Shown one piece after another: positions 1 to 57,054 of a DNA stretch of 64,000 bases. The DNA comes from Guillardia theta CCMP2712 (taxonomy: Eukaryota; Protista; Cryptophyta): NCBI RefSeq assembly GCF_000315625.1, contig NW_005434574.1:188224-252223 (forward strand). The letters are read 5' to 3'. The position numbers and the translations under genes were made by a program. Below the pieces are notes generated by a model. It was given only the letters and a program-made list of their open reading frames with translations. It was not told the DNA's origin and ran no database searches. How positions within the stretch are numbered: the first letter of the stretch is position 1; each line of letters opens with the position of its first letter.

Positions 1-3000
1 GCCTGTGACTCCATCTCCTTCTTGTATTGATCTTGTTCGGTAACTTTTTCTTTCTTCTCCACCTTGTTCTCCACCTTGTTGCTATTCGCATTGGACTCCG
101 TTGAAGCTGTTGTCAAAGTAATCAACATGGGAAGTTCAAAGAATCAATGAGTGCAAGACTTACAGGCAGGGTTCTCATCCGAACTGTCTGATGTATTGTT
201 CCCTCTGAAAGAACAAAGTCAGGATCGTCCTTGACAATGAGGAAAGGAAAATTGTGAGAAGGTTATCTTCAATAAGCATTGGTATCAACATCGTTCACGC
301 TCCTCTTTTCCCGTTATCATCATTGTTGTCCTTGTGCATGATTCAAATCATCATCAACTCAATCTTCATCTCAATCATCTTTCAAGTCAACATAACAATT
401 TGTGCCGTCGTTTCCATAATCACCTTTACCATCATCACAACCATCTTCATCACTTTGACCATCGTCTTCATCATGAACATTGCATAATAATCAACAGCAG
501 CTACAACTTGAGCAGCAGCATCAGCTCCAACAACTTTACCACCACAGCCATCAATCAAGACTAACAACATTATGGAAGATTGTCATTGCAGTGAAAATGA
601 AATTTTAGCTTGATAAACGATTCAAACCTCTTTAGAACTGACGGCAAATCCTTGTAAGAGCCGTAGGACTGGAGTTTACTTGGATCAAGGCCTGATGATT
701 AACAGCCACGATTGAAATCATTACAAAATTCTCTTTCATCTCCTCAACAAGCATGTTTGACATCAAGATAAAGCTTTCTTTCATCTCCTCTCACCGATGT
801 ACTTGAAGTATCTCTCTGCTTCATCTTCTAAGAAATCCCAGTACCTTTGCAAGTTGATGTCAACGGCAGTTGATGTCAACGGCATCTTTTCGAACTCATT
901 CACATCACAAAACTCACTCTTGATCAGTCATGTTTGGTTTCCTTCCTGGCTGGACAATCTCTGACTTGGGTTCTCCACACCACTTTACTCACGTTCTGCA
1001 ATCAGCAACGAGACAATCATCACAGAAGACAACAACACCTCATCGATCTCAAAAGTGTAGCTGCAGTCTTTCCAGAAATCATCTTCGTCTGGTACAGATC
1101 TTCATGTCAAGACAATGTCTCTACGGTGATTACACACCGTTGGTTGTGTTTTGTTCCTCCTTTGGCCAATAAAATGTTTGCTGACCCATTCTCCTCTCCT
1201 CCTCATTCACTCCCTCTAGAAAAGGAACACTAGTGCCCTGTAAGACGGTCAACAGAAAAAGATTGAGATGGGGGAAGAGAGATTGTTGGCTACATCTGTC
1301 ATGGTCTTTGACATCGTGTCTTCATTGTTCTCATCTTCAAAGGACAAAGTAAGATCGAAGACAAGATCCAGCAAGGAAAGTAAAGATGATGGGAAGAGGG
1401 AAAGATATTGGTGGAGTAGTTTATGATCAGTCAGGAGAGTGTTGAAAAGTTTGAATTGATCGCATCAAAGTGAAAAGGAATCGCGGAGCAAAACAAGAGG
1501 AAAGATGATGGAGACAAAGACGCTGGGAAATATCCAAGGTACAAAAGGAACAAACGAAGTCTCATACATGGAGGAGGCATCATACTGTCAGAGCTTGGAG
1601 GGGCATTCTCGTCCCTATGAGACAGAGAAACAAAAATGTCAAACAGCGCTACAACAAGCAACTTGTCATAGAAAACCTCTTCAACGCTCCCGATGATTCG
1701 TCCCCAAGGTTCAAACCAAACTTGAAAACAACGTCAATTCTAGCAGATCTTCCATCCACTCCAGACCTTCTTTGCAAGCTCATTGGCTAGCTCGTCTCCC
1801 TTCTGAATCCCTTCCTTCATTTCATTGTCGACATCCAAACACGGGACTTGATCGTTCTCTTCAACTTCAAAGTTTCCGAATTGATCAAGATCGGGGTCAG
1901 ATGAGAATTCAAAGATATCCCTTCCTTCTCTTGCTCGCTCTTCAACACACAACAACCCCAGTCAGCACCCAACGAGTTTTCGCTGCCAAACTCGAAGTAC
2001 CGAGCTCAGCCCCGTCGTCAGCCTCCACGGGCGACTTCTTCGGATCCTCCTTCCGAACACTCTCCATTGCGACGACATTGTTCGCTTGTTCGTCTCCTTG
2101 ATCAGCGTCTTCTTCTTCATTGACGTCATCATTGTCATCTGTCAATCTCAGTGCCGTCCTGAAACGCCATCATCGGCGATCGGAGCAAGACAACAACAGC
2201 TCAGCGTTTCAACCTCTCGGTGATGTCCTCTATCTGCGTTCCACGGAAGTCTGAAGGACGAACAGCATTCAGCGCCAGGAGAGGAGAGGAGAGGAGAGGA
2301 GAGGAGAGGAGAGGAGAGGAGAGGACAGGAAAAGAGAGGACAGGACAGGAAAAGAGAGGACAGGACAGGAAAAGAGAGGACAGGACAGGAGAGGAGAGCA
2401 AAGAAAGAGAGAGCAGAGCAGAGCAGAGCAGAGGGATGCAGAGCAGAGGGATGAAGGAGATGGAGGAGATGAGATGAGGGGAGGGGAGGGGGAGATATAT
2501 GGAGGAGATGGAGGAGAGGAGAGGGGAAGGAAGAAGAGAGGAGAGGGATGAAGCAGAAGGGGAAGGGAGAGGAGAGAGGTAGGGAAAAGAGATGCATGAA
2601 GGAGGAGAGGTGAGGTGAGAGGAAGGAGGATCAGAGGAAGGGGATGAAAGGGATGAAGCAGCGAGGGAGGAGGAAGTACCGGATCTGTCGATGCCGTCCT
2701 CCCTCAGCTGCCTCGCAATCTCGTCAAAAAGCTCCTGCACATGGGTTGTCATCGAGAGTTTCCTCTAGTACACGAGAATGGAGGGACCTGCTGCTCCTGA
2801 GCAAGCTCGTCATTGTTCTTGCCGCTGCTCTTCAGTCGGGCATCGACATTCTTGACGACCTTGACATGCCCATCACACTATGATCTACAAGTCTATCTCA
2901 TCGAATTCACTTGGTTCAGCTTGAACGGGCTGTCCTCAGGCTTCCCTGCAAGGATGCTCTGCTCCCTCTCCTTCTGGGTGTCCTGCATACATCCACAACC

Positions 3001-3480
3001 TCACATCGAGCCCGCACTTCCTGCGTCAGCACCTTTCCAAGCTGTCTCCCCTTGATCTTTACGAGCTTGTCCTTGTCTGCCCTAGCGATCAGCGTTGTAC
3101 CTTAGCTCCTCTCATCGCATCGCATCGTAACCTTGCTCTAGCACATCCTGTATGCTCCTTGCAGCTCTGTCGATGTCCTCCTCATCCAAGTCGAAGTCGC
3201 TGCCTCCCTCCCCTGCCCCCGCCTGCTTCTCACACAGATCGCATGAGCCGCTAGGAAGGTTCGAGCGTCAGCAAAACCTCAGCAAGGTCCCAAGCATCTG
3301 ACTGTGCTGCTGCTGAACTTCTGTCAGCTCCCTCCCTCTCATCGCCGAATCTTGACTCTGACCTGTTCGAGCTGGTGGATTCTTCGCAGCCTTGCCCTTC
3401 CGTTGGAGCGGCCTTGTACTTGCTGTGCGTTTCCTGCACATGCAATCGTCATCCTTTACCCCCTCCAGACTCACCCCCTC
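1..3480 (-). CDS. Probable multi-exon hypothetical gene(s) with acidic low-complexity segments; structure unresolved
   Basis: Minus-strand coding-like blocks (DDNDDVNEEEDADQGDEQ, HVQELFDEIARQLREDG) separated by microsatellite-filled intron-like tracts; no recognisable domain. Confidence 0.3.
2279..2600. repeat. (GAGAG)n/(GACAG)n purine microsatellite, probably intronic
   Basis: Pentamer repeats read directly. Confidence 0.9.
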
Positions 3481-3503
3481 CTGCCCCTGCCCCTGCCCCT
3501 GCC

Positions 3504-3569
<66 letters not shown>

Positions 3570-3570
3570 T
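3480..3570. repeat. (CCTGCT/CCTGCC)n hexamer microsatellite
   Basis: Read directly. Confidence 0.9.
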
Positions 3571-4364
3571 CTAATCCTTGTTCCTTTCTCTTTCTTTACC
3601 TGAATCAAGTTCATCTCCCCTACCTCGTCGCCCTCACGCTACCTTTCATCCTCCTCCCCTCCTCGCGCTACCTTTCATCCTCCTCCCCTCCTCTGTTCCC
3701 TTTCCTCCTCCTCCATTTCCAGAACCAAGTCTCACCTAGTTCCTCCTCTCAGCCGTAGTGCGCTGTACACGTGTTCATCGACGCGACAGCATTTGCCCAA
3801 CCCAAGAGGCTCAGTCCTGTTGTCTGCAAGAGAGAGGAGGAGGAGGACGATAACGGAGATAACTGCACAGCCATGCGGAAGAAGACATTGGTAGGAAGTC
3901 ATGCCAGCATCGGTTTCCTAAGGTCACATCGAGCCAAGACTCTTCATTCCGATTTCATGCTGTGCTTTTGAGTGAGTTCAATGGACCTGTGAGGCTCTCT
4001 TGTGATATCGATGCTTTTTGGTGCAAGATCTATCGTTGCGACTGCTCGATGAGTTCCCTATCTTAAGAGTTCAAGGTGTTCCTTCCTTTGATTCTTTCAG
4101 GCTCCGATTCCTTCTCCATCTCCATTCTCATCTTCACCACCTCTTCTTGTTCTTGGTTCCTGTTCTTGATCTTGATCTTGTTCTTGTTCTTGTTCTTCTC
4201 TTCCTCCCGCAAGATCAGTTGTCCCGCGCAAGCCCCTTTGTATTGATCTCATCCGATTGAAACCGATTTTCATAAAGGCGTGTCACTGGCACCGGAAACG
4301 GTGATCATGAGTCGGCCCGGACGGCCCGGCCCCGGCGCCCGGCCTTGCGGCAGTTCCTTTCAAT

Positions 4365-4436: not shown

Positions 4437-5059
4437 AAGGACGTTCCGGGTGAGCTCGGCAGGCGGTCGTCGGGAGCCGGCCCGGTACGGTCCATGAGCC
4501 TCGCCGGAGGCGACTGCCAGTCGGAGTCCCGGGCCGGGCCGCGCCGCCGGGGCCAGGCCAGCGTCCATCCGAAGGTGTCGGACTTTATTACGGCACTCAA
4601 AACGTTCTGTCAACTTCCGTACCACCCCTCTCCTCCCCTTGAAAACAACCGTCCGCTCCACCCCTGGCTCCACCCCCCTACTACGGATGACGGCCCCCGT
4701 AGCCTGAGAGGTCGCAAGTCAAAATCAGTCTGTGGTATGAGTGCGGCAAGCAAGCAGCGGGTTCCGGCAAGGGACGGTGCTCGGACTCCGGGACGCCAAA
4801 CCCTCGAAAGCAAGACACGCTCGGAGTCCTCTGAGAGTCTCAAGCACAAGCCTACCTCCATGCACGCGAGCAAGTCAAGTCTGCCACCCCCGACACCTGC
4901 CCTCCTCCTGACGCCCTGCATACACTGCGAGAGGCTTGCGTCCCTTGAGGACGACTGCCCCATCTTCCTTGACCTCAACTACCACCATAACTACACCAGG
5001 AAACAGCCTTCCTGCAAAAACAAAACCTACGCGCGAAGCCAGCTGAAATCCAAACAAAT

Positions 5060-6276
5060 ATGTGCCAGAGCGAACAATCACAACAAACGCTTGAAATAGA
5101 GATCAAAGAATCCTCAGAAAAATTCACCATCGATAAGCCCCCAGCCAAATGCAACGCAGATGAATTGCAAATCGAACCATCAAAGGCAACCAAGGAACTG
5201 AAAATCGATACCGAAGATGTAAAGCTTGGGTTTCAGCGTAGACCCTCCCTTCAGGACGACTGCCCCATCTTCCTTGACCTCGTCTTCCACCATAACATCC
5301 TCAAGCCAAATGACATCGACCGCTGCGGATCCTTCGCCATCCGTCGATCCTCCCTCACCTTCGGCGACGTCCTCGGCCAAGGCTCCTGCGGGGAGGTCAG
5401 GAGCGCCCTCTACAACGGCAGGCAGGTCGCCGTCAAGACCCTGTGCTCGAAGCTCGACGCCCGGTCCGAGGAGGGCAAGGACCTGCTCAAGGAGATCAGC
5501 ATGATGAGCCACGCGTTCCGGCACAAGAACGTGGTGGACTTCTACGGCATCTACGAGCACGACGGGCTGCCGTGGCTGGTGATGGAGCTGATGCCGGGGG
5601 GAGCCTGGAGCAGTACTACGAGGCCAAGAAGAAGTCGCGACGGGACGGGCGCTGGCGGCCCAAGACGAGGAGGGCAGTGTCGTGGGTGGAGGACATCCTG
5701 AGCGCGCTGGCGTACCTGCACGCGCAGAAGCCGCCGGTGATCCACCGAGACATCAAGCCGGCCAACATGCTGCTGACGGGGGACGGGAGGACGGTGAAGA
5801 TCGGGGACTTCGGGCTCAGCCGCATGTGTCCGCTGAGCCCGGGCAAGGCGCCGCTGACACCGGGAGGAGGCAGGGGGTCTGGCGGCTTCTTGTCGGACGA
5901 GTCGTTCATGTCGACGGAGCTGACAGGCACAACGGGGACGTACCGGTACATGGCGCCGGAGATCTTCCGGGGAGAGGGTCAGTACACGGCGGCGGTGGAC
6001 GTGTACTCTTTCTCGCTGGTGATGTGGTACATCTTCGCCGGGGAGCATCCCTTCTGCAACATCGACGGACACTCGGTGGCCAGCATGGCGGCCAAGTACA
6101 ACTTCCGTCCGGCAGTGCTGAGCGAGCGGATGATGCCGTGGGAGCTACAGGGGATGATGAGGCGATCATGGGCGGGGGAGGGGAAGGAGAGGCCGAGGGC
6201 GGCGGAGCTTCTGGAGGAGGTCGAGGCATGGCGAGGTAGGCGCGCGGGGTGTAGAGGTGTCTTCTCATGGAGATGA
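5060..6276 (+). pseudogene. TKL-type Ser/Thr kinase copy 1, frameshifted
   Basis: All kinase motifs present but split over two frames; G6 run at 5596-5601 versus G7 in the other copies. Could be a homopolymer sequencing error. Confidence 0.8.
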
Positions 6277-7017: not shown

Positions 7018-8159
7018 GTGACGAGTCACACACTAGACTCCCGGTCCACGACGGTTGGCAATCATGACTGTCGTGGGGCGGGCCCGGCCTGGCAGTGGAT
7101 TCTCATCGATGAGACAGGATGAGACAGCATTTGGCCCACCCAAGAGGTTCAGTCCTGTTGTCTGCAAGAGAGAGGAGGAGGAGGACGATAACGGGTGGTA
7201 ACTTAGCGCTGACGTTCGGTTGGTAGGAAGTCATGCCAGCATCCGGTGTGACACGCCTTCATGAAACTTTCGGAATCGGTTTCAACAGTACCGGAGGACG
7301 TTCCGGGCCGGCCCGGCGTGAGCTCGTGGGCTGAGTTGTCACTAGTAGAACTGCCGGCCCGGTACGGTCCATGATGAAGCCCCGGGCCCGCCGGGCCCGC
7401 GGGGCAGCCTCCGCTGTACGGCCGGGCCGTGGCCCCACAGCGGACGGTCGCTGCATCAGGTAGGGTTGCAGGCAACTTGAGGCATTCCGTTCGGTGCCAC
7501 GGTGGCGGCGACTCAGTCCCGGGCCGGGCTGCCGGGGCCAGGCCAGCGTCTGATCATCGGATCATGTGTTGTACCCACGGCACTCAGTGGCAGGCTTCAA
7601 CCGGGACGATGTGACGGTAACAGCATCATGCCGAAATAGCGAAAACTAGAAGGACAATATGAAGTTTTATATGAAATACCTCCGGTACCGTGTCGGGTAC
7701 ATTTTGGTACTTCATCAGGCAAAATACCGACTGTTATGCATACTATGCCCAACGTGGCAGGGCGCATCTTGTACCGGGTGGACCTGGCGGCTACTATCGT
7801 AAACTCAGCACGGTACATACAACAGATATACGGTACTACGAGGATGAGGCTTGACCGTACGGTACATTATTAGCAAGATCTTCACTGTGACGACACTATT
7901 CTTAAGTTTGAGTAAATTGAAACCTGGAGAGCAGCGCGTCCATCGAAGGTGACTTTATATTACCGCACTCAACTTGAGCCGTTGAAGCTTGGCTGAGTCA
8001 GCCGGGAAGGGCCCGGGCCGGGCCCCCACCGTCAGTCTCTTTGTTTTATTTTTGTCGTAAACTTCCGACGTGATCGCTCGGTACGTTCTGTCAACTCAGT
8101 TCGGTACCACCCCTCTCCTCCCCTTGAAAACAACCGTCCGCTCCACCCCCCTACTACCG

Positions 8160-28599: not shown

Positions 28600-30260
28600 C
28601 AGCAACTGTAGTTTGACCTACTTCGTCTGGATCGTGTGGTTTTGTCATGCTGTTTTCAACCTCGTCTTCATAGGTATGCAGCTTTGATTTGCCGAAATTG
28701 GTTGATGACATTTTCCTGCGCTTCAGGCTGTGCTATCAAGTCGGTATGTTTCATTTTATGCTCGCGTTTCCTTGATCCTACAATTTGTCGTCGGCATGAC
28801 TCGTTTCATTCAAATTCTCAGTACCAAAGATATCATCAAGTTCAGGTATTCCCTCTTGATTTTCTGAAATCCAATGGATGACCCTGTTTGTAGCAATTTC
28901 GCGATTTCCTGGGCGTAATTATCCTCATGTTCTCAGAAGGAGATTCTTGCACATTGTTTGACATGTTATAGCCCTGCATTGCTTTCGATCATGTACCTTA
29001 CATACTCGGTCATCTACCTCTTAGGAAGATATCTGAAGTCGACCAGGCATGTTTGCTTTCTTTCTCAACTGTGCTTAAAGCTTCACCTGTCACAGTTTTC
29101 ATGCTGGATGGATTTCCGCGGGTTCTTTCTTCCTCATATTTCAGCACATGGTGCTGGGAGACTCTCACTCCACGCTCCGATTCCTCGCTGACAGTGTTCA
29201 TACAGACATACGTGGTGTGGTCAGTGACCATACTTTGCCAGTGAGCATTTGACTGCCGATGTGAACTAACAGGAGCTGACGTCTTGACTTTGCAGTAGCG
29301 GAAGCTCAGGTATAGATTCTTCTGCACTCTCGGCCCGGATGTGAACTATGGATTGAAGAGGCCGTGTGCGACCAAACCATGTACGCAAGTTTGGGTACGT
29401 GATAGCTCCTCAACCCACGTAACCTAAAAACAAACTTTTGCGCAGTGTTTGCAGGATTTGCAATGGGCTCGGGATCACTCTTTTTCTTGTTGTTCACATT
29501 CTATCACTTCAAGTAATGCTATTGTCTCTTCCACTTGTCTCTTTCTCAACTCCTCTTTGTTTTCTGACTAATCCAACACCTGCCCTACCTTCTCTCTTTC
29601 CTTGACTTCCTTCTTCCCGACCTCCTTTCTTCACACTTTGCATTTGCAGGTATGTCGAATCGAGCGACGGCGTAAGTAGAAGCTATGCCATGAAGTACTT
29701 TTGCTCTAATATCCCAAGCTGCTTACACTTTGATCAGATCCATGGGGGGAGTTCCACGATCGGATGCAATATGACGACAGATAGACCTGCATCTTTGTCC
29801 TTATGTCATGTATGATTTGCTCAACACTCTGTCTGCCAGATATAACCAAATGCGGCACAAAGAGATCGACTGTATAAATGGTTTAATTCCCCTCAATCCA
29901 GCGAACTAGAAGGACGATTCCTAATAGAATCAAGAATCCAATAAGAGCTACACTTTGATGAGAAAGATCAAAGCCGAGAACCTGTCAGGCAAAGTCAGAT
30001 CAAAGAACCCTGTGCCAACAAATCCCTTTGAACTTACCGAAAGCAAACTATCCTTTCTTTCCACTCTTACACCAGTAGGCCGCGATAGTGGAGTTCGGCT
30101 CACTCGGTGAACCTGGTCAACGATGGTCACATGTATGGAATTCCCCCTCTTGTGAGAAGAGCTGCCTTGCTACAACCAGACTGCTTTAGTACCTTGCTGG
30201 ATTTTCTACCAAACTTTCATATCATGTCTCACCCAGAGCAATGGCGTGAGAGTCACTGAG
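28600..30260 (+). CDS. Possible intron-rich hypothetical gene
   Basis: CTGAC...CAG acceptors (e.g. 29276-29295), pyrimidine tract ending TTTGCAG at 29649, plausible last exon ...GIPPLVRRAALLQPD...*; no domain recognised. Confidence 0.25.
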
Positions 30261-31029
30261 TCACTCAGAAACGTAGAAAACTCATCTGCTAATCAACGTT
30301 TCCTCATCGTCTCTTTCCTCGTCCTCGTCCTCGTCTCCCTCCCCCCTCGTCCTCCTCAAGGCTCACCGGCGCACGTTGCCTCAGGCTACTGTCATCCATG
30401 GTTGATTGGAGGCTAGCTAATCACCCGGCGTTGCCTCGCATGATCGGCGCCGGCCGCAAGTGCGGCCGCCCGGCCGCCCGGCGGCCGGGCGCGGGCCATT
30501 CCGAAGTTCCGCCGGACTGCCTCCGCCCGGACACTGCGGGCCTAGCCAGGCTAGCCTGGGCCGGGCTACTAGCGGCTGAGCCGTAGTACGGTAGTCACTG
30601 ACATGATCCCGGCTGACGGGCCGGCCCGACTCATGCCATCGGATGCCATCCTGGCCGCAGTCCGACGGGTGACATAGGCTGACCGTCCGACTACCGGGCT
30701 AGGTCAACTCAGTGCCGCCGGGCCCCCCGGGCCCATCATGCCGTCACAGAGTCACGGGCCCGGCCAACTTCGATAGCCGCACTAGTCATTGACCATTCCG
30801 TTCCAATTCCCTTCTGGATTTTTTCTGTTTTCGGAGGGGTCTTTTTCGTACAGGATTTTTATTTCACAGGGTAATGAAAGTTTGTACCACTAGTCTGAAA
30901 TGTTTTCAGAACATTATTGCGCACAACTGTTTCCAAATATGGATTGTCAATGCTTAAAAGTATTATACATAATACAAATCTCCAAAAATAATATAGCGCC
31001 CTGCACTTCGTCTACCATTGCCCATTCGA

Positions 31030-32190
31030 ATGCGAGAGCCGGCAACGGCACGTCGGCGGAGCGTCAGAACAGCAGCGGCGAATGGCATACAGTCTCGACG
31101 AGATGCTGATGATCGACAAAGCTTTTCTGACTTAGAAGGATCTCCGTTATCTGCACCTGAATCTTTGTATGAACCGCTCTGCTTGGAAATCCAAGCAGCT
31201 CGAGAACAATCTCGTTTTGAGGTTCGATGGGTCAATCCTATTATGGATGAGCAGATTCTCCTCACACCAGGTGTAGGCTTATCATATTTTGAAGATGATC
31301 AGGCAAGCATGAGGAGATTTGGTATCATAAAACGTCTTGTTTCGGAAACCAGCGTGGAGGTATACATCTTGTATGACAAGATACTCCTAGAAAAGGTTGA
31401 TCAGAACATAACGAACCATGGTCTTGGCAACAGAAATCTACGGAAGATCATTCAATCGATGTCAGAAAGTATTTGCTATCAATCAATTTACCTTGATGTC
31501 GTTGACATTGATATGATTGAAGATTTGGTAAATGTTCAATACCCAATTTTTCTTGATCCACATGCGCCAATGCCAAGCTTGAAAAATGTACAAGTTGTAG
31601 GACACATTTTCTTCAAGGATGGAGCGCAAAAGTCGTTCTGTGACATTTCTTACTTCAAAATGCCAAATCCTGAGAGAACAATCAGCAGATTCATCTCTGG
31701 TAATGACTCTATTTCATCCTCTGCAGCATATCTTCAAATGATTTCTGACATTGAATCGTTCAAGTTGAGCATGAAGCAATGGCTGAAATCAAGAAGCTCT
31801 GTGTATGAGAAGGCAGGAACCCGTTCTTTGGAGTTCACTTGTAATGTTTCCATCCGCAGCATACTTCGATTAGTTCCTAGGCAAATGTTCAAATTTATCA
31901 AAGTGAAAAGAACCAGTCACAATTATACTTGGGTGTTACCAGCCAATATTGTCAGCAGCAAGGTTTTCAGACAAGCTTTAGATCTGCCTTTAAAGTCAGC
32001 TCCACAACTGCAAGAGAACTTGACGCAGATTTTTCTAGGTTTTTCTCTTCTCATTCAAAGTCGATTACGCATTAACACAACGTTTCCTAGGTGGCCCAAT
32101 GTACATTTCGATCAAGCGTGGCAATCTTGTGCTAGGGTTCGAAACCATTGCAAGCATTGGTGGCATGTTCGGAAAGCTTCAGTGGGATGA
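31030..32190 (+). CDS. Transposon accessory protein with BAH-like domain (3' part may be spliced)
   Basis: Long ORF; LLTPGVGLSY, RFGIIKRL, VEVYILY, ICYQSIYLDVVDIDMIEDLVNV follow the order and pattern of the BAH consensus. Confidence 0.55.
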   Translation: MREPATARRRSVRTAAANGIQSRRDADDRQSFSDLEGSPLSAPESLYEPLCLEIQAAREQSRFEVRWVNPIMDEQILLTPGVGLSYFEDDQASMRRFGIIKRLVSETSVEVYILYDKILLEKVDQNITNHGLGNRNLRKIIQSMSESICYQSIYLDVVDIDMIEDLVNVQYPIFLDPHAPMPSLKNVQVVGHIFFKDGAQKSFCDISYFKMPNPERTISRFISGNDSISSSAAYLQMISDIESFKLSMKQWLKSRSSVYEKAGTRSLEFTCNVSIRSILRLVPRQMFKFIKVKRTSHNYTWVLPANIVSSKVFRQALDLPLKSAPQLQENLTQIFLGFSLLIQSRLRINTTFPRWPNVHFDQAWQSCARVRNHCKHWWHVRKASVG

Positions 32191-35045
32191 TGCACGAGGC
32201 AGGAAGAGGAGATAAGTGTAATACAGATTTATCAATGAACCTAAACCTGATGCAAGGAGATTTCTAAATGCAAACCAATTGCTCAGTTTTCTACTCATCA
32301 TTTTGTGGTCTTCTTGTTCGGCTTCCTCAGCTGACCCCTCCATCATTTCGTCATAAGCACGCTTTTTTGATCCTGCAGCATTTGACTCCATCACTCCCTT
32401 TCTCCAGCAAGGTCTTCCATAAATGCGATGTCGCAACTCTAAAGCTGACATACTCAAGCATCCTAATGTAATGTTCCGCTTGGAAAGATGATAGTGAAAC
32501 ATTTCTGCCACATGACCGGCAGCAAGCATGTGGAAGTATACAGCACTGAATAGTTCCTTGCTTCCACACTCAACCACATACTTCACCACGAATGTGTTGA
32601 TTCTTGTTGCTAAGGTTTCAACGCTTTCAGGAGTAAGCTCTGAAACATGAGTACAAGACAAAGTAGCAAGCACAGAAGACAATTCAGTGAAAATTTCTTG
32701 CCATCGCTGCCTTTCTTCCACATTTTCGTACAACAATACCAAGAGAGGTCCCATGGCCACATTCATCAAGTCATCATACTGTTTCCCTGTCATGTTTGGA
32801 AGTTGCTTCTTGTCATTGAGCTCAAGCTTGTAGTTGATTCCACTCTTGTGTAGGATACTTTGTGCGGCACTGATCCTCTTTTTCTTCTTGGCCGTGAAGA
32901 AAATACTTTTCAAGGCGCAGTGAACAATCCTCATCTTGAGATGTAACATACAAAGAACGAGGCACATACATGTCAACCCGATATCTGACAACTTTTCATG
33001 ATCCCGAGACATTCCATGGTCTTGTTTCAATACAACAACCTTTTGGCCCTTCTTCAACATGCCGGAGGTCTTGCTGGATCTGATCTTTGTAATATCTTGT
33101 CTGTTCAAGCTTTTCCCATCAAACATGCACGTATCAACGATGTTGTTTTTGCCACCATCCATCACCACGTCCTGCATCAGCCAAAACACATCTGGTCGGA
33201 GAGATCTGTCCTTGCAAAACTCATCTACTGTGGTTTCAGTTGCAACTTCGTTGATGTCGAAGATGCAATGGCGCTCCCCATTCTTCACTTTGCAATACAA
33301 GCAACAGGCGTGGTCAGGATTCTTTTGGCTGCCACCACCTGTGCGAATATCTTCAGTTCATGTTTAACACAAAGAGTTGATGAATTACCTGACATCCCCA
33401 TGAGATCCCAAAATCCCTTCAAATCCCCACGAAAATCAATTTCTATTTCAATGACGAGATCAGGTGTGGAATTCGGATCACTGGCTGTTCTATCACGTCC
33501 CCCAATGCAGTTCAAAACCCCATCTTTGTCCTTGTAGAAGTGAAGTCCAGCTTTGATTTTCTTGATCTCTCCGTTCTCACAAGTGACAAACAGATCCTTC
33601 AAGATGCTTTTCAAATCAAAACCATAGACATTCCACAGATTCTTGTCAATATTCTCGATAGTGTCCTTCAGGTACAACAACAAGAAAGAGATATATGAAG
33701 CAGGCGAATTCATTCTGGTCTCCTGGTCAAACATAGAGTTTGCAACGTCAACCGCCTTGTTCCACACAGCTATGAGATTCATTGCAAACTCTGTCTGTTC
33801 TGTACCTGACTGAGCTGATGATCCCAATCTCGTGCTATCGAAACAGAGGGAAAGCACCAAGAATTCTACAAGGTACATGTTTGGATCTTCTCGCGCAAGC
33901 TTCATGAACAACAGTTCGAGCAATTTGAGAATGGAAGCACCATGTCCGCCAGGAAGTTCATTGATTCCGTCCACCATGTCAGTCACAAGCTTCTTCTGCT
34001 TGGCTCTCGAAGTACTGATAGAAGATGTACTTCCAAATATTTTGACTCCGCATTTTTTCATCATGTCATAAACGAATTTCAAAGATTTGTGTGTCAGCTG
34101 TTGACCCATAGTCAAGAGACCAACTTCATCCACGTTGGGAGCTATTGCATCATACAAGCTCTGGATGGCTTTTTTGACTTTGCGATTTCTCTCACAACGG
34201 CTGTCCAAATTCGGTGCAATTGCGTGAGCATATCCTGTCAAAAAATTTTCGAAATGAAACAATGAATCCGGATTTTGCCTCAACGTGGAAAGATGGCCGA
34301 ATGCCTTTCCAGCCTGACTAGAGCCATTAAGCCCAGACATCTGACGAATACCTTTTGACAACAAAGCAGATAATGACCCAACCTCGGAGAAAATGTCTTT
34401 GAGAATTTTTTCCTTCCGATACTCGAACTCCTTGGGGATATCTTCGACATTCATGGGGCACTTATCATTGGGATAATTGGCTTTCCAAATGTCTTCGAAC
34501 GTCAAGTTCAAAATTCTGTCTACGTTTGGCAACAACTCTTTCAGCGCCATATTTTCCCTAGTAAGCATTTCCTTTTCATACTGTAGCTGATTCACCTGAC
34601 ATGACAGACTGAAATATCCCTGTATGGTACTGCCGACAACAGATGCTGGTGAAAACAAATATCCATTTCCAACAAAGCTCATAAATGTGCTGACATCTGG
34701 TCTACCTTTGCAATCAAGGAAGCCTTCCATCCAAGCAAAGTACTCTACTCCCCTCCAGGTTTTCAGGTCCCATGACGGCAAACGACGGTCTGGCCTTGGA
34801 CTGATCTGGTTCAAAGTCGAGGCAACCTGAGGGCTATCCAAATTCATTGGATAGAATTGATGGATGTTTTCCATATCTTGACAATGCAAAGGTCGACGAT
34901 AGAAGCATGGATGGACTCGGAAAGGATCGAAGTTTTCTGCGCGGCATGATGATTGAGAAAACAAGTTTTGCACAAAAACATGAGTTTGTTGGTGGATTTT
35001 GTCCGGGAAAACTTTGTTGAGAAGCACAGGTTTCCACCATTCCAA
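32179..35045 (-). CDS. RAG1-core/Transib/Chapaev-like DDE transposase; 50-nt intron at 33339-33388; true start unresolved
   Basis: Splicing GTAATT...CACAG joins the 586-aa and 373-aa ORFs in frame. Motifs in order: LCFDSTR, FRGDLKGFWDLMG, CCLYC, MLHLKMRI, YFHMLAAGHVAEM, LGCLSMSALELRHR. Confidence 0.85.
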
Positions 35046-36408
35046 TGAAGAGTGAGAAAAGCACCAAAGATCCTCTTTGCAGTTTCAAATTAGAGAAAAA
35101 ATATTGGTTCCTGTGGCCAAACTTTTCCATCCAGGGCTGAGCACAACAATCGAAGCTTATATAATAGTAGGATCCCACCCACCCCATGATCTGTCATTTT
35201 TCACTACCCCCTACCACCAAATTACTATTATTTTCATTAGTTGATGGGGGTTAATTATTTGGTAGGTAGGGTAGTCAACTGCGATTGTGTTTCTCCTACC
35301 CACCCTAGGAAAAGAGAGAATCGAAGGGGTACCGAGCACAATTGTGTGTTTGATGTTAGATCAGATCATGGGGGAACACAGTACAAGTTACCCTACCCCC
35401 ACATAACCTTTAGGTAGGGGTTCCATCAAATTTGATACCGGTACTGCCTATGAAAATATAAGTCTAAAGATGGGTGCTTGATAGGTATTACAGGGTTATA
35501 TCTGTAATGGGGTGGGTAGTCGACCAGCGTGGTATTTTTTTTTCACCCCCCCCGACCCTTCAACAAGTGATTATAGTTCAAGCCAATCTGTACGAGATAT
35601 TCTTCTTAAAATCAACTTGTTGAAGAGGTTAAAAGGGTGGAGTCCAATCCTTGCTCAAATATTTGGCCTACCCCACCTTAAGACATATGATATAAAAACA
35701 AGGGGTAGTCATCGGCTGTCTTGCCTGAGCGGACGGGTGCCTAGAAGATTCAGAAACTTTTTGGTACAAAATTTGTACGAAGGGGTCAGGACCCCTCTGG
35801 TACAAAACATGCAACGATTTGGAACAAGTATTTTAAAGCCCGTACAAACAAAATGGTCTGGTACAATAAATTCCAGAAGGGACTTGGAACGGAATGACGC
35901 CCGGCCAACCGGTATCTGGCGACATTCGCTCAAGCCAGTGCGGCGACTCCCGACACTGTGACGCCACTGTCAACCGTACTCAGGGCGGTAGCTGGCGACG
36001 GGGGCCGCTCACTGACTGAGTGAGCCTTTCCGGATCATGAGCGGCATGCCATGATGATGACACGCCAACGCCGTATGGCTCCGAGCCTTGAAAGTTGTCG
36101 GACAGCCAGTGAGATACACGGTGCCCCGAGAAAGCTTCGACTCGATTGTGACCAAGCAGCCTATAGCAACGAAGAAGATGGCCTTGAAAGTGACGTCCAA
36201 GGCTTACAAAAGGCGCTTTAAAGGCTCAAGTGTTACCCTTAACAGACAAAAATTTCACGTGAGCTCTGCTCCCTATGAGACCTAAAGACTCAGTGAAACC
36301 AAGAGGTATTTACTACAACCTGACAAAACCGAAATACAAAAGTTCCTCTCCACAAAATACACTAGACAAGGTCTTGCTCCCTTAGCCAAATCACTCCTTC
36401 CCTGACCC

Positions 36409-37623
36409 TCATCTCCATGAGAAGACACCTCTACACCCCGCACGCCTCCCTCGCCATGCCTCTACCTCCTCCAGAAGCTCCGCCGCCCTCGGCCTCTCCT
36501 TTCCCTCCCCTGCCCATGATCGCCTCATCATCCCCTGTAGCTCTCTCGGAACCCGATCGTTGAGAAGCGACGGACGGAAGTCGTGCTTGGCCGCCATGCT
36601 GGCCACCGAGTGTCCGTCGATGTTGCAGAAGGGATGCTCCCCGGCGAAGATGTACCACATCACCAGCGAGAAAGAGTACACGTCCACCGCCGCCGTGTAC
36701 TGACCCTCTCCCCGGAAGATCTCCGGCGCCATGTACCGGTACGTCCCCGTTGTGCCTGTCAGCTCCGTCGACATGAACGACTCGTCCGACAAGAAGCCGC
36801 CAGACCCCCTGCCCCCTCCCGGTGTCAGCGGCGCCTTGCCCGGGCTCAGCGGACACATGCGGCTGAGCCCGAAGTCCCCGATCTTCACCGTCCTCCCGTC
36901 CTCCGTCAGCAGCATGTTGGCCGGCTTGATGTCTCGGTGGATCACCGGCGGCTTCTGCGCGTGCAGGTACGCCAGCGCGCTCAGGATGTCCTCCACCCAC
37001 GACACTGCCCTCCTCGTCTCGGGCCGCCAGCGCCCGTCCCGTCGCGACTTCTTCTTGGCCTCGTAGTACTGCTCCAGGCTCCCCCCCGGCATCAGCTCCA
37101 TCACCAGCCACGGCAGCCCGTCGTGCTCGTAGATGCCGTAGAACTCCACCACGTTCTTGTGCCGGAACGCGTGGCTCATCATGCCGATCTCCTTGAGCAG
37201 GTCCTTGCCCTCCTCGGACCGGGCGTCGAGCTTGGAGCAAAGAGTCTTGACGGCGACCTGCCTGCCGTTATAGAGGGCGCTCCTGACCTCCCCGCAGGAG
37301 CCTTGGCCGAGGACGTCACCGAAGGTGAGGGAGGATCGACGGATGGCGAAGGATCCGCAGCGGTCGATGTCATTTTGCTTGAGGATGTTATGGTGGAAGA
37401 CGAGGTCAAGGAAGATGGGGCAGTCGTCCTGAAGGGAGGGTCTACGCACAAATCCAAGCTTTACATCTTCGGTATCGATTTTCATTTCCTTGGTTGGCTT
37501 TGATGGCTCAATTTGCAATTCATCTGCGTTGCATTTGGCTGGGGGCTTATCGATGGTGAATTTTTCTGAGGATTCTTTGATCTCTATTTCAAGTGTTTGT
37601 TGTGATTGTTCGCTTTGGCACAT
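36409..37623 (-). CDS. TKL-type protein kinase copy 5
   Basis: Full motif set, intact ORF. Confidence 0.93.
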   Translation of the reverse strand: MCQSEQSQQTLEIEIKESSEKFTIDKPPAKCNADELQIEPSKPTKEMKIDTEDVKLGFVRRPSLQDDCPIFLDLVFHHNILKQNDIDRCGSFAIRRSSLTFGDVLGQGSCGEVRSALYNGRQVAVKTLCSKLDARSEEGKDLLKEIGMMSHAFRHKNVVEFYGIYEHDGLPWLVMELMPGGSLEQYYEAKKKSRRDGRWRPETRRAVSWVEDILSALAYLHAQKPPVIHRDIKPANMLLTEDGRTVKIGDFGLSRMCPLSPGKAPLTPGGGRGSGGFLSDESFMSTELTGTTGTYRYMAPEIFRGEGQYTAAVDVYSFSLVMWYIFAGEHPFCNIDGHSVASMAAKHDFRPSLLNDRVPRELQGMMRRSWAGEGKERPRAAELLEEVEAWRGRRAGCRGVFSWR

Positions 37624-38851: not shown

Positions 38852-40048
38852 CTATCTATTGCCTAACATCGCCGACAATGCATGAACAAAACAACCGCTG
38901 CGAAAATTGCTCTGCATTCGCCATGCCTCTACCTCCTCAAGAAGCTCCGCCGCCCTCGGCCTCTCCTTCCCCTCCCCCGCCCATGATCGCCTCATTATCC
39001 CCTGTAGCTCCCTTGGCATCATCCGCTCGCTCAGCACTGCCGGACGACACTCGTATTTAGCTGCCATGCTGGCCACCGAGTATCCGTCGATGTTGCAGAA
39101 GGGATGCTCCCCGGAGAAGATGTACCACATCACCAGCGAGAAAGAGTACACGTCCACCGCCGCCGTGTACTGACCCTCTCCCCGGAAGATCTCCGGCGCC
39201 ATGTACCGGTACGTCCCTGCTCTGGCTGTCATTTCGCATTCGATACCAAGATCGAGTTTGTCCGCCATCTCTGAGTCTTGAAGATTGCACGCTCCCCAGG
39301 ATGGGCATCTCCTACTCACTCCAAAGTCCCCGATCTTCACCGTCCTCCCGTCCCCCGTCAGCAGCATGTTGGCCGGCTTGATGTCTCGGTGGATCACCGG
39401 CGGCTTCTGCGCGTGCAGGTACGCCAGCGCGCTCAGGATGTCCTCCACCCACGACACTGCCCTCCTCGTCTCGGGCCGCCAGCGCCCGTCCCGTCGCGAC
39501 TTCTTCTTGGCCTCGTAGTACTGCTCCAGGCTCCCCCCCGGCATCAGCTCCATCACCAGCCACGGCAGCCCGTCGTGCTCGTAGATGCCGTAGAAGTCCA
39601 CCACGTTCTTGTGCCGGAACGCGTGGCTCATCATGCCGATCTCCTTGAGCAGGTCCTTGCCCTCCTCGGACCGGGCGTCGAGCTTGGAGCACAGGGTCTT
39701 GACGGCGACCTGCCTGCCGTTGTAGAGGGCGCTCCTGACCTCCCCGCAGGAGCCTTGGCCGAGGACGTCGCCGAAGGTGAGGGAGGATCGACGGATGGCG
39801 AAGGATCCGCAGCGGATAAGCTCCTTTTTGTGTATTTTATGGTGGGAGGCGAGGTCAAGGAAGACGGGGCAGTCGTCCTCGAGTGAAGATGGCGTTCTTT
39901 TGAGGATTTGCAGTTTTGTTGTTTTCTCCCCGTAATTGATTTCTATGAAACCATACCTGGAGAAGAACGTTGGATCAATCTCTAGTGCCAACATCCTGCA
40001 GTTTGACTCGAAGGACGAACGCTCGGAGCAGCTATCGGTATGGCACAT
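38852..40048 (-). CDS. TKL-type protein kinase copy 6 (divergent N-terminus, activation loop and tail)
   Basis: Full motif set, intact ORF. Confidence 0.93.
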   Translation of the reverse strand: MCHTDSCSERSSFESNCRMLALEIDPTFFSRYGFIEINYGEKTTKLQILKRTPSSLEDDCPVFLDLASHHKIHKKELIRCGSFAIRRSSLTFGDVLGQGSCGEVRSALYNGRQVAVKTLCSKLDARSEEGKDLLKEIGMMSHAFRHKNVVDFYGIYEHDGLPWLVMELMPGGSLEQYYEAKKKSRRDGRWRPETRRAVSWVEDILSALAYLHAQKPPVIHRDIKPANMLLTGDGRTVKIGDFGVSRRCPSWGACNLQDSEMADKLDLGIECEMTARAGTYRYMAPEIFRGEGQYTAAVDVYSFSLVMWYIFSGEHPFCNIDGYSVASMAAKYECRPAVLSERMMPRELQGIMRRSWAGEGKERPRAAELLEEVEAWRMQSNFRSGCFVHALSAMLGNR

Positions 40049-51133: not shown

Positions 51134-51735
51134 ATACAACCTCGTTGGGGCCCCACAACTTGCCTCCCTGCTCTAACATTGTTACGGCCTCCGGACGAAT
51201 ACTTCAGAGCCCCACCCCCTACTCGCCTAAAAGATTTTCAATGGACGGGTAGCAGATAAAAGTACCCGTCCTAAAAATGAAGGACCGGTAGTCTGAATGG
51301 GTAAAAGAGGGGTAGTCTTGACGTGGCATGATTCTGACCGTCCATAGCCGGGTCCTCCAACGTATCGCCAGCCGCCACCGTCCGACCGGGAGGCTCAACT
51401 GATAGGCTGCTCAGTGACTCGGAACTACCGCCGGCCCCGGCCGGGCGGCCCGACCCCGGCCCGGTCGCAGCCGCGGCCTGATCGGAGGCTCCGACTGTGA
51501 GGCCGGGCCGCGGCTGCCGGCCAGGCGCCGCAGTGAGCCCGCCTCTCGGATGAGCACCGGAGTCCCGGTCCGAGTTCGAGTCGACGGTTCCGAAGTTCGT
51601 TTGCCAAGTTGGCGAGCGGCTAGATCATAAATCGGAACTTGCCGAATATGGGCCCGGCATGAATGATGATTGTCCGGGCCTGAAGTTTCTCAGCCCGGCG
51701 CTATCCAACCGTTAGATCGACGGACAACTATCATG

Positions 51736-52868
51736 ATCGCGTCGGATCAGATTGTTGCGTCGAAGGGGGGAGTTATAGACCAAATCGATGACTGGAAGCA
51801 AAATTTGCAAACCCCGATGAAAAGAGATGGTTTCGACGGGGAAACCCCTTGAGCACCCTACCTACCTTTGTCTATGCCCAAAAAGGGGTGCGGGTGCCTC
51901 AGATACAGAGAGAAATGGTTCCACCTTGAGCGTGTGAGAGAACCGCGCGCTGACATGACGAGGCAGCAGCAGGGGCATCAGCATGCTGACCTGTCGCACT
52001 AGCCTAGTAGAGGTGAGGGGATGAAAGAGCTTGAGGAGGGAGTGGAGCTCTGGACGCTGACTCATTTCCAGATGTTGTGTTGAAAGATATTGTGTTGAAA
52101 GATGTTGTGTTGGATCATGAAAGCCTTACCTAGAAAAAGCCATCTAGATCTATGCAGCAGTGTGATCTAGTCATCGAAAGCATGACGACAAACGACACTT
52201 GGCTACTCACTGGGCAAATGCGAGGGAGAGCTCATACGCACAGAAATGCAGTGTAGTGTACTTGAAGAGGATTGACAGGACGTGGTTGAAATGCTCATTG
52301 CGTGATGTGGTGTTGTCAGGCATCGATCATCGTAGGAGAGAGATCCCATCCAATCCCAGCGCAGGCTGGATTTAGTCTTGATGATACCACTAGTAGGTAG
52401 ATCTTGATGCTTTAGTCTTGATGATACCACTAGCAGGTAGATCTTGATGCTTTAGTCTTGATGATACCACTAGTAGGTAGATCTTGATGCTTTAGTCTTG
52501 ATGATACCACTAGCAGGTAGATCTTGATGCTTTAGTCTTGATGATACCACTAGTAGGTAGATCTTGATGCTTTGTACCTCATGCAATATCCACATGTCGA
52601 CATGTTGAGGTGTAGAGAGGAGAAGAATAGAGATGAAATGAAATGGGAATGGATAGTGTCATAGAGATGCATGGGATGCGATGGGGGGGGGAAGGGGATG
52701 GGATGAAAGGGGAGGGTGCGTCTTGAGTTATCTATGCCACCTTTGCTACCAGTGACGCACGGCAGGGCAAAACTCTGCAGCTCAGATCAGATAACGAGCC
52801 CGGCCAGCGTGTCATGCTGACACCGTGGCGGCGGGACAAGGTGTATGCGCAGCGGCTAGATTTCGGAT
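51736..52868 (+). repeat. ~1.1-kb direct repeat, copy 1
   Basis: Matches 54036-55059 along its length. Confidence 0.92.
52371..52573. repeat. 40-bp minisatellite, 5 copies (2 in the second direct repeat)
   Basis: TTTAGTCTTGATGATACCACTAG(T/C)AGGTAGATCTTGATGC. Confidence 0.95.
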
Positions 52869-54035
52869 TCAAAGCAGATTATGCATTAGTCACTCATTTC
52901 ATTGTACCATTGAGTCCATTTTCGGTCCGAGTGACGTGGGCCAAGGACCCTTGACTCGCCTCAGGTCATGTTTGCGGATGAGAACTCAGTCACAACTATC
53001 ATGGCAGCGCGCAGGCTTGAGGGTGACGGTCGGACCCGGAGGTCCGACGCTCACTGAGCTGCATTGGAGTCTGGGGACCGTAATCTTATCATGAGGGCCG
53101 AGATCTCCGGGCGCGGCGCGGCGCCGCGGCCCAGGCTCAGCCCGGTGATGCCAGGATCGGACCGTCACGCTATGCCGGTTACGCCGGCCCTTCAGCTGCA
53201 GTGCGGCCGCCATACTAGCCTACGCCCGACCCCTCAGCCTGGCCACACTGCCCGGGCTCCCGCCTGAAGTCTTTACTTAAAGTAAAGCCTGAACTTGGCT
53301 GGCTTGGCCCGGCCTTGAACCGTGAACAGTGTCCTGCCATGCTGGAGCCTCGGAGTCCGGCGAAGTGACGTCCCTGAGTCGGAGTCCGGCGCTCAGCGGC
53401 TACTACTGCGACAGTGTTACAGTCACGGTACCGGGGTACGGTATCAGCCTGCTGGTACTAAAGCCCGGCCCGGCGGCCCGGGTCGCCGAGTCCCCCGGGG
53501 AGGGGGGCCGGCGCCGGCCTGGGAGCCGCGGCCGCGCTCAGTCACTGGGCCCACATGGAATGGGGAGCGCCGCCGCGTCCGATCACAGTGCCGCTGGCGG
53601 GGCAGGCGGCGGCTCAGCTCGGACTGCGCGCCGCGCGCTGGCACGCTTGATCCGAAAAAAAACCGGCAGGCAGGGGCTGCACACGGTGGTCGTCGGCGGC
53701 GTGCGGCAGCGCCGAACTTGCGAACCGTGAACCCGGCGCGCTGCCTCCGGCGACCGGCCGCACCGGCGGCCGCCCCCGCGGGCCCGGCCCCCTGCCCGGC
53801 CGCGGCCCGCCTCACTGCCTGAGCAGCTGCCGTCTGAGTCATCAACGGGCGTGCTGGTTGCAGGCGAAAGGCTCACGGTCGCCCGGGGGGGGCGGAAGGC
53901 CCTGAGGGCCGCAGGCGCAGCCTGCCCGGCAGTGCTGTACGAAACGGCCAGCCTAACAGTGATCGGACGGCGTTGGTTGGATGAGAGTCGGAACTCGGAA
54001 CTCCGAAGGTTTCAGAAGAAGCGTTCGCACTAGAT

Positions 54036-55059
54036 ATCGCGTCGGATCAGATTGTTGCGTCAAAGGGGGGAGTTGTAGCCAACTTGAAGCAAAAATTGAC
54101 CCCGACTTGTGATGAAAAGGAGTGGTTTCGACGGGGTGGCTGAAAAGGCGACCCCACCCTTGAGCACCCTACCTACCTTTGTCTATGCCCAAAAAGGGGT
54201 GCGGGTGCCTCAGATACAGAGAGAAATGGTTCCACCTTGAGCGTGTGAGAGAACCGCGCGCTGACATGACGAGGCAGCAGCAGGGGCATCAGCATGCTGA
54301 CCTGTCGCACTAGCCTAGTAGAGGTGAGGGGGTCAAAGAGCTTGAGGAGGGAGTGGAGCTCTGGACGCTGACTCATTTCCAGATGTTGTGTCGAAAGATG
54401 TTGTGTTGAAAGATGTTGTGTTGGATCATGAAAGCCTTACCTAGAAAAAGCCATCTAGATCTATACAGCAGTGCGATCTAGTCATCGAAAGCATGACGAC
54501 AAACGACACCTGGCCCCTCACTGGGCAAATGCGAGGGAGAGCTCATACGCACAGAAATGCAGTGTAGTGTACTTGAAGAGGATTGACAGGACGTGGTTGA
54601 AATGCTCATTGCGTGATGCGCTGTTGTCAGGCATCGATCATCGTAGGAAAGAGATCCCAACCAAGCGCAGGCTGGATTTAGTCTTGGTGATACCACGAGT
54701 AGGTAGATCTTGATGCTTTAGTCTTGATGATACCACTAGTAGGTAGATCCTGATGCTTTGTACCTCATGCAATATCAACATGTCGACATGTTGAGGTGTA
54801 GAGAGGAGAAGAATAGAGATGAAATGAAATGGGAAGGGATAGTGTCATAGAGATGCATGGGATGCGATGGGGGGAGGAGGGGATGGGATGAAAGGGGAGG
54901 GTGCGTCTTGAGTTATCTATGCCACCTTTGCTACCAGTGACGCACGGCAGGGCAAAGCTCTGCAGCTCAGATCAGATAACGAGCCCGGCCAGCGTGTCAT
55001 GCTGACACCGCGGCGGCGGGACAAGGTGTATGCGCAGCCTGAGCGGCTAGATTACGGAT
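54036..55059 (+). repeat. ~1.0-kb direct repeat, copy 2
   Basis: Matches 51736-52868. Confidence 0.92.
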
Positions 55060-57054
55060 CATCCAAAGGGCTAATAGGTAAAGTACTTGACATGGGCCAA
55101 GGATCATCATGCCGCAGCGCCCGGCCGCACAGCCGGCTGAGAGCCTGTTCGGTCTGGGCCCGGGGGACGGACTCTGAGCGACCCGGTATGGTACTGGACC
55201 GTGCCTCCGGGCCGCTGTGCAGTGCGGCCCATAAGGCGGCGGCCAGTACCGTACTCAGTGTCTACGGTTTGTCACACGGCACTGTGTCTTTTCGGCTGAG
55301 GCTCTTTCAATGAAGCGAGCCTGAAGAGGCTGAGTCGCCATATTCGATTGTCAGTGTGACTCTGAGGTCACTGACCGTCAGTACGGTGCCAGTCCGACAG
55401 CACTAGAACCGTGAGTACTTGGCCGGATTCCGAAGTTCGGAGTCACAATCATGAGGGCCCGGCCTGTCACCCGGCCGCCCCGGCGGCGCGCGGCGCCCGG
55501 CCGGGCGGCGAGGCCGCGCCGGTTGCCGGTGGCAGTGCCCACCGTGGCACTGGGCCCGGCCGGCCGGGACGCCTTGGCCCAGGCTGCCCCCCCCGGGCCC
55601 CCCGGCGGGACCGATCGGATGATCCCTGAGACCGTGCCTCAGCGGAGAGCCAGTGCCTTTCGCAGCGTTTCACATTGTTGCCCCTCGGGGGCGAATTGTA
55701 TTTTTGCGCCATTACGGGTCGTTTTAGAAGGCTCAAAGGCTGCATGTCAACGTTTCGCCGGGGCCCTCACGAAACGGTGGCAGAAGGTGAAAGGCTGCTG
55801 AAGGTACGCAGACTAAGAGCGATGGTATACGGAGGGAAAGGATTCAATGCTCTGTTTGATGATAGTTTGAAGACATTTGATAGATGAACACCTTCTATCA
55901 ATCTTTTGTTACCAACTTTCGTTGGATCGGCCCAAAAGAAGCAATGGCAAGCACAGTCGGATTTGAAGAAGAACCGAGATCGGCACTTTGTATCACCATC
56001 TATTCACATCAATCTGGGATGCTGCGACCCGATCTACCAAGCATACCATATCCTGCTCTTTGGAAATATTCTATCGTAAAGAAAAAAAACTGCCGTGCTT
56101 TCATTTCGCTCCCACAATACAGCTATGATCAGCAGACAAAAAGATGTTGTCTAGAAGCAGCCTGCTTGAACATTGCCAGCAATGTGGGGAACTCATAACA
56201 GCAATTCATTTCACGATAAAACGTATAGACTCTAGTGCTGAAACCTCCTCAGCTTTCACCAATCACCGCTAGCGGAGATGGGGGAACTAGTAACAATGCA
56301 CACTGCTTTTGCACAGTCTACAAATCTATGACAAAATGTAAGTACTTTGATATACCAATAGGCAACAGTTGATCACATGATTGAAAGGGTTGGATATGCT
56401 CTTCATTGGTGTATCCAGGTCCATGGCTCCTATCCCGCTGCCTTGCCTTCATTGGGTTTCAACACTTTGTCCATCGTCAAGCCGCATTTTGGTCCCCTCT
56501 TCCCCTCCCTGCAATTCAGTGTGACTTGAAAAAAGTACTTTTGAGTGGGAAATACAATGAATATACATCGATTCGTATTGTTGCGTGCGGGCAGGGTTAT
56601 AGCTTTTGTCGCAAAGATCAATATTCTAAAACATATTAAAAAAGATCCGAAGCGATGCCAGTGGAAAACCATTATGGTCCCAACTGACACCTTTTCGGAT
56701 GCACCGTACATGAAACCCAACGTTTCGACGGGAGATTACACAGTCAAAACTATCTCCTGCTACCATATATTGAATTATAAAACCCTATGGAAACAATGTT
56801 CTGAGGGGGACTCGATGTTTCTACAACACACAACGGCAGGCCTCAGTCAATTAAGGGAATTTGCCAGGTTCACAAGCTGAGACTGAGATTGCTTGAAGCA
56901 ACCGTCCACTGATGACAACACTTGATGTGCTATGTACTGTGATTGGACAGCCAGGGCCAGTCTGTCAGTGTGCTGACGTTGAAGGCTCTGATATGAGATC
57001 GAGCGAACCCAACTAGCACGAACTTGATACACAGTCGACAATTTTAACAAACAT

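Follow-up and report, generated by a model that had tools for sequence, protein, structure and literature searches.

A transcribed two-gene transposon with a predicted RAG1/Transib-type transposase and a convergent BAH-fold partner in Guillardia theta

We analysed a stretch of 64,000 nt from the cryptophyte Guillardia theta CCMP2712 (contig NW_005434574.1, assembly GCF_000315625.1, forward strand), hereafter the window, in whose coordinates all positions at this locus are given. It harbours a DNA element of 5103 bp (30794–35896) with a GC content of 42%, compared with 62–67% in its flanks, in which a transposase gene and a partner gene converge tail-to-tail inside terminal inverted repeats (TIRs). 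The left TIR (30794–30822, plus strand) begins with CATTCC (CATTCCG), the right TIR (35868–35896, minus strand) is complementary to it at 27 of 29 positions, and together they form the longest inverted repeat within 11 kb around the locus. A first-pass annotation, made from the sequence alone, had described 25 bp TIRs identical at 24 positions, CAT rather than CAC termini and the dinucleotide AC on both outer sides; each of these features is present, the outer 25 nt being complementary at 24 positions within arms that extend to 29 bp. The element ends in CAT..ATG, in agreement with the CA..TG ends of the CMCT clade of transposons, and no CAC heptamer is present. This clade, which comprises EnSpm/CACTA, Mirage, Chapaev, Transib, Plavaka, ESTA, Lanisha and RAG1, is characterized by D-D-E residues, C(2)C and H(3-4)H motifs, CA..TG ends and target-site duplications (TSDs) of 2–5 bp (Kojima 2025, PMC12730594). 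The left junction reads GAC (30791–30793, plus strand) and the right one AC (35897–35898), which could represent a 2 bp match or a 3 bp duplication minus one base. Three subterminal TGGTACAA boxes near the right end (35757–35871, plus strand) are putative binding sites.

The element is real and transcribed. Its transposase gene, on the minus strand, consists of exon 1 (33389–34874), which is taken to start at the first in-frame ATG (34874), and exon 2 (32179–33338), separated by a 50 nt GT-AG intron (33339–33388) in phase 1 that keeps the frame; the product is 881 amino acids (aa) long, counted from that ATG. The first-pass annotation had joined the two minus-strand open reading frames (ORFs) through this very intron. 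Transcript data confirm this: the intron is absent from two RNA-type contig sets and retained in a DNA-type run, and the NCBI gene model GUITHDRAFT_145307 has an identical splice junction. The two RNA-type runs, X1 and X2, are presumed to be RNA, and their contigs carry no strand or expression-level information; those covering the transposase begin at 34937–34965. The two exons form one gene, since many of the related loci in this genome are intronless ORFs of 750–1265 codons that match both.

Exon 1 carries D346 (33837–33839), the conserved D404 (33663–33665) and D484 (33423–33425), while C508/C511, C625/H628, H765/H771, E796 (32437–32439) and H799 lie in exon 2. All are conserved among relatives at 20–64% identity. 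In order, these residues presumably correspond to RAG1 D600, E662, D708, C727/C730, H795, H937/H942 and E962, and the five RAG1-like motifs picked out in the first-pass annotation all occur in the order given there. The CxxC motif after the second D (C508/C511) matches the C(2)C of the CMCT clade; the histidine pair before the E is conserved too, but is spaced H-x5-H throughout the family, compared with H(3-4)H in the CMCT definition. The D-to-E distance (D484–E796) is 312 aa, against 253 aa in RAG1 and 206–214 aa in Transib (PMC1131882), and the greater length reflects an insertion of approximately 90 aa between the CxxC and LH motifs (33010–33276, minus strand). The insertion has a weak LysM-like pattern (E 0.02–0.3) that is not established; a de novo TIM-barrel match was rejected as a repeat artefact.

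The partner gene is encoded on the plus strand by exon 1 (31030–32038), whose ATG at 31030 was placed by alignment with relatives, and exon 2 (32091–32215), which ends in TAA and whose tail matches an intronless sister partner. Between them lies a 52 nt GT-AG intron (32039–32090), missed in the first-pass annotation and seen in contigs and in the loose ends of raw RNA reads; its removal yields a protein of 377 aa. The partner does face the transposase as first described, but the overlap of the ORF ends given as 32179–32190 had to be revised, because with the intron the partner ends at 32215 and the two coding 3′ ends overlap by 37 nt (32179–32215).

Exon 1 of the partner was folded together with five relatives (6 sequences). 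All 27 Foldseek matches of the model with E < 0.001 were BAH proteins, as were the top 19 VIA rows (ORC1, PBRM1, DNMT1, EBS, Sir3). The BAH-fold domain, residues 59–210 (31204–31659, plus strand), reached a best Z-score of 10.6 with a root-mean-square deviation of 3.3–3.9 over approximately 123 residues, and the next fold scored 4.6. The model thus predicts a BAH barrel plus helices and not a six-bladed kelch propeller, so that the partner is not RAG2-like. Y115 is invariant, whereas the tryptophan of the usual WFY motif is found in only one relative, and from its residues the usual aromatic cage looks incomplete. A PLD-like reading, suggested by weak feature-search leads at 0.76, was rejected.

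For the transposase, the structure modelled was that of a natural intronless relative, P0006 (residues 200–868; predicted local distance difference test (pLDDT) score 73), which is 22–24% identical to the window protein and aligns to both of its exons. The window exons were entered as separate rows of the alignment, and some other rows are database gene models. Structural comparison gave a Z-score of 21.6 over 436 residues with the RAG1 core, tied with the HzTransib hairpin-forming complex at 20.7, followed by BbRAG1L (19.5), P element (12.8), ISCth4 (11.3) and Hermes (8.8), in a PDB comparison list from which CACTA, Chapaev and Plavaka transposases are absent. When predicted structures were compared, TM-scores of 0.52–0.58 were reached alike by CACTA Transposase_21 clusters, by RAG1-RNase-H clusters and by unnamed clusters from fungi, plants and rotifers. 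By language-model features, exon 2 of the window alone scored 0.95 against clusters with RAG1 ZnC2/ZnH2 domains. The fold of P0006 and the exon 2 features support the initial proposal of a spliced RAG1/Transib/CMC-type DDE transposase. A fair reading of these models is an RNase H-fold DDE enzyme of the CMCT clade, with an insertion domain of RAG1/Transib type, and not specifically the ancestor of RAG1, given that HzTransib ties with RAG1 and CACTA-type models score alike. Sequence similarity to Transib and RAG1 is below alignment level, and 19 family sequences gave no match in Pfam, hence none to Transposase_21 (EnSpm/CACTA) or a Plavaka family.

The TIR was found 15 times in the G. theta assembly and its reversed control not at all. 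Apart from the window element there are five complete TIR-bounded copies (L036–L040), which are non-autonomous, 2.3–2.4 kb long and mutually about 98% identical. They have only their ends in common with the window element, namely the TIR and 85–95 terminal bases, with no detectable transposase or partner. Two deletion derivatives, C35 and C154, also carry the TIR, the latter seen as a joint in reads as well; the remaining matches are single ends. Variants of the TIR include 3–4 nt insertions in L038 and L040 and a replaced end in L046. Elements with these ends have been mobilized recently.

At the protein level, 25 loci in the assembly match transposase exon 2 at E < 1e-10, and 22 of these carry a partner homologue tail-to-tail within approximately 1 kb, a pairing that persists even where the transposases are only about 20% identical. 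A sister subfamily on three contigs, with 53–64% identical transposases and CATTCC ends, also has a kinase gene aboard: behind the partner lies an ORF for a protein kinase, which includes an Arg/Glu-rich repeat (L048 365–1849; L050 7199–8620), and a second partner fragment is found on the far side of the transposase. A further 15 or so loci (C2, C4, C12, C28, C41, C75, C103, C113, C169, C183, C307 and others) have a partner homologue at 33–36% identity and no adjacent transposase match; these are possibly partner-only non-autonomous elements.

When 1.84 billion proteins were searched with a profile, every match came from G. theta, from Hanusia phi or from unassigned ENA/JGI entries, apart from two repeat artefacts. 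In the searches made, relatives were confined to Guillardia, Hanusia and unassigned marine contigs. Of the five outside sets of contigs, four contain the convergent pair, and the fifth (L052) ends approximately 340 nt past the transposase. Scans of viral, JGI metagenome and prokaryotic genomes and of viral structures found no relatives, and length-limited, word-based homologue searches returned G. theta models or nothing.

The first-pass annotation had taken a 2 bp target duplication to be a property of the element, a claim that the sister copies do not sustain. Flank matches at the five complete non-autonomous copies amount to 1, 0, 0, 0 and 1 bases, the 2 bp match is seen at the window locus only, and one such match in six is within chance. 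L037 sits without duplication inside a 21 bp tandem subtelomeric array that adjoins CCCTAAA telomere repeats (437–500, 2920–3066); L038 has lost 1 nt relative to 13 identical empty sites; and the flanks of L036 are non-colinear. Searches for empty sites of the window locus, L036, L039, L040 and the L055 site found none. Matching left and right flanks across subfamily copies gave only chance-level matches, and this attempt to rescue a TSD was rejected. A 4.62 kb relative with CAT..ATG ends, from outside contigs and known in its target sites from junctions only, presents a clearer picture. Two left flanks and two right flanks of this relative match up as GCG/GCG and CGG/CGG, the former pair being joined physically in one contig; the interrupted reading frames stay open if 3 bases are collapsed, but not if 2 are. 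(L054 and L055, the two insertions, each disrupt a reading frame, in one case a retrotransposon-integrase-like one.) The 2 bp match at the window is better taken as chance or as an eroded 3 bp duplication; in the latter case the junction could be written GAC..(G)AC.

The window also contains 32 motifs of the form X-c-rc(X)-g-X with X = 3 nt, whereas 60 shuffled versions gave 1.3 on average and never more than 4; no motif with longer X occurs. They span 4783–55550 and cluster in GC-rich tracts (examples at 7494–7504, 30251–30263, 30476–30509, 36046–36056 and 51588–55550); the element itself contains none, and five are no more than 600 nt away from it. The motif at 7494 is an 8 nt insertion relative to a paralogue near 11690, which carries a single X. 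These motifs look like hairpin excision footprints of an element with a 3 bp TSD: a hairpin-forming element with such a TSD and C..G ends would be expected to leave them if its non-transferred strand is cut one base inside the element. These three traits suit the family of the window element, but could equally suit another CMCT family of this genome.

The window element is in our view probably (roughly 0.8) an autonomous DNA transposon that moves by cut and paste, through the mechanism outlined here, and belongs to a CMCT lineage restricted to cryptophytes; we classify this two-gene lineage as new and as distinct from both RAGL and Transib proper. The transposase, through D346, D484 and E796 and a zinc site formed by C508/C511/H765/H771, would bind the CAT..ATG ends, and by analogy with RAG and Transib excision would proceed by nicking and hairpin formation on the flanks. 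Insertion with a stagger of approximately 3 bp would follow, and the junctions would often be eroded afterwards by re-cutting and end joining. The least certain step concerns the BAH protein, which might equally well prove to be, or not to be, a dedicated helper linking the transposase to chromatin, in target choice or in access to the ends.

Several observations weigh against this interpretation. The transposase sequence, searched exon-wise and with profiles, matches none of the transposase families of Pfam or PDB, so the family assignment rests on predicted folds; the protein folded was the distant relative P0006 instead of the window transposase, and the partner model is a moderate one (pLDDT 67). 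A shared BAH fold shows no function by itself, and contacts of the partner with histones or with the transposase are putative. None of the six complete same-TIR copies has a clean 3 bp TSD, and the link between the footprints and this family is putative. Finally, the window element is the sole full-length copy of its subfamily found in the assembly, and the stretch upstream of its ATG (34875–35040, minus strand), homologous to the N-terminal coding region of the sister subfamily, carries a 1 nt indel relative to it near 34970–34985, so that this copy may miss approximately 55 N-terminal transposase residues. The initial description as possibly intact and autonomous thus stands for the two-gene autonomous layout and has to be qualified for intactness.

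The convergent gene pair, and RAG1 at the top of the structural list, might suggest that an alga harbours a true RAGL/ProtoRAG element or a direct ancestor of RAG, whose partner would be a diverged RAG2; RAGL elements are indeed known from another alga, Aureococcus (PMC9435367). The first-pass label 'ProtoRAG-like', however, survives only for gene orientation: the partner is predicted to be a BAH barrel plus helices and not a six-bladed kelch, the CAC heptamer and 5 bp TSD that define RAGL (PMC7204232) are missing, there is no sequence similarity to RAG1, and its structural score is shared with HzTransib and matched by CACTA-type clusters. We regard this origin as very improbable. A very divergent member of a named CMCT lineage, be it Lanisha, PlavakaB, EnSpm or Transib subgroup I, is less remote though still unlikely. 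In its favour, the predicted structures closest to the model belong to Transposase_21 clusters and to unnamed clusters of Mucoromycota, Streptophyta and Cnidaria (TM-score 0.52–0.58), and Lanisha is recorded from moss and, by family labels, probably from a mucoromycete fungus and a coral; PlavakaB has CATCA..TGATG ends and 2–3 bp TSDs, and the TIRs and TSDs of Transib are labile (10.64898/2026.08.26.747230). Set against this are the blank Pfam result for the 19 family sequences, the return of cryptophyte-type relatives only from 1.84 billion proteins, the divergent H-x5-H spacing and D-to-E distance, and the fact that no convergent BAH partner is described in the papers searched.

Whether the partner takes part in transposition is a separate matter. 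It could tentatively be seen as an anti-silencing or regulatory cargo gene (cf. VANC, TET/JBP), and an anti-silencing role is the chief alternative to that of a helper. Transposon-borne chromatin factors are common (10.1101/2021.11.30.470311, 10.1101/2024.04.02.587720, PMC12730594), and the partner-like loci lacking a neighbouring transposase match also speak for this reading. The strict one-to-one, tail-to-tail pairing fits a dedicated function, yet cannot separate a cofactor from an anti-silencing factor. As regards integration, the subfamily might insert without a fixed duplication; end joining would then capture its excised ends at breaks already present, as has been reported for fragments excised by RAG (PMC5339680). 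The L037 array insertion, the base lost at L038 and the non-colinear flanks of L036 are consistent with such capture, but the two clean 3 bp duplications of the 4.62 kb relative are not, and, by post hoc inspection, a single short deletion at a microhomology would turn a 3 bp duplication into the junction seen at L037, at L038 or in the window; we find break capture distinctly doubtful. It is also unlikely, if somewhat less so, that the RAG design was invented independently here, with a RAG1-fold transposase that needs a second, convergent subunit of chromatin-reader type (BAH where RAG2 has kelch-PHD), cuts the first strand one base inside and is the mutator behind the hairpin footprints and GC-rich scar tracts of Guillardia.

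Some further features accompany these elements. Three insertions from two subfamilies (L036 1–500, L048 8954–9001, L050 1–74) hit one and the same 332 bp satellite unit at positions no more than 2 bp apart. The C35 deletion derivative (L041) is nested between 514 bp perfect inverted arms (3206–3719, 7088–7601) built of tandem subunits, probably another foldback-type element. A 653 bp near-perfect inverted duplication around a gene start (L047 1390–2042 / 4682–5334) is unrelated to the element. In the window, 36409–37623 and 38918–39000 correspond to a protein kinase ORF, its 3′ end duplicated downstream, which is part of a local kinase array.

The Guillardia element resembles the CMCT clade as a whole in its DDE residues, C(2)C motif and CA..TG ends, and departs from it in the H-x5-H spacing, the lack of a sequence match to member families and the fixed convergent BAH partner. 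Against the 2–5 bp TSDs of the clade stand 3 bp in the 4.62 kb relative, a 2 bp match at the window and none at the five sister copies. With RAG1–RAG2 and the RAGL/ProtoRAG elements (BbRAGL, AanRAGL) it shares the core fold (Z-score 19.5–21.6) and, as in ProtoRAG, a second gene facing the transposase; RAG2 carries a PHD, and the Guillardia partner likewise carries a chromatin-reader-type fold. Structural-alignment identity is only 10–13%, however, the partner has BAH in place of kelch, and the CATTCC ends come with neither CAC heptamer nor 5 bp TSD. Transib (HzTransib) is alike in fold (Z-score 20.7 to the hairpin-forming complex) and motif order, but has a single gene, CAC ends and a 5 bp TSD, where the Guillardia element has two genes and a different TIR and TSD. 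EnSpm/CACTA (TnpD plus TnpA) is comparable in fold by predicted-structure search (TM-score 0.53–0.57), in the 3 bp TSDs of the 4.62 kb relative and in subterminal boxes, and the small β-barrels of the accessory protein of Arabidopsis SPM3 (10.1101/2024.04.02.587720) can be likened to the Guillardia partner. It differs in that the Guillardia transposase has no Transposase_21 match, the ends are CAT and not CAC, and TnpA is head-to-tail or an alternative isoform, whereas the partner is convergent with a BAH fold. PlavakaB, also of CMCT lineage, has CAT..ATG outer bases and 2–3 bp TSDs, but the Guillardia TIR reads CATTCC and not CATCA, and there is no Pfam match; Lanisha (MT647524), another CMCT lineage, is set beside the family by description only.

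Neither the Guillardia family nor any CMCT element accompanied by a BAH partner was found described in the literature searched, which did not cover Repbase; the two-gene design appears undescribed, within a known transposon clade. As the element is expressed in a culturable, sequenced alga and has non-autonomous derivatives, its cleavage chemistry, TSD length and dependence on the partner are directly testable, and if the family makes the abundant hairpin footprints, it would be a major local mutator of the Guillardia genome. The evolution of RAG is usually told as a single acquisition of RAG2 by Transib. Another, separate lineage with the RAG1 fold, which across deep divergence has retained a partner unlike RAG2 but of chromatin-reader fold, offers a natural comparison for why a second subunit is recruited and how targets are chosen.

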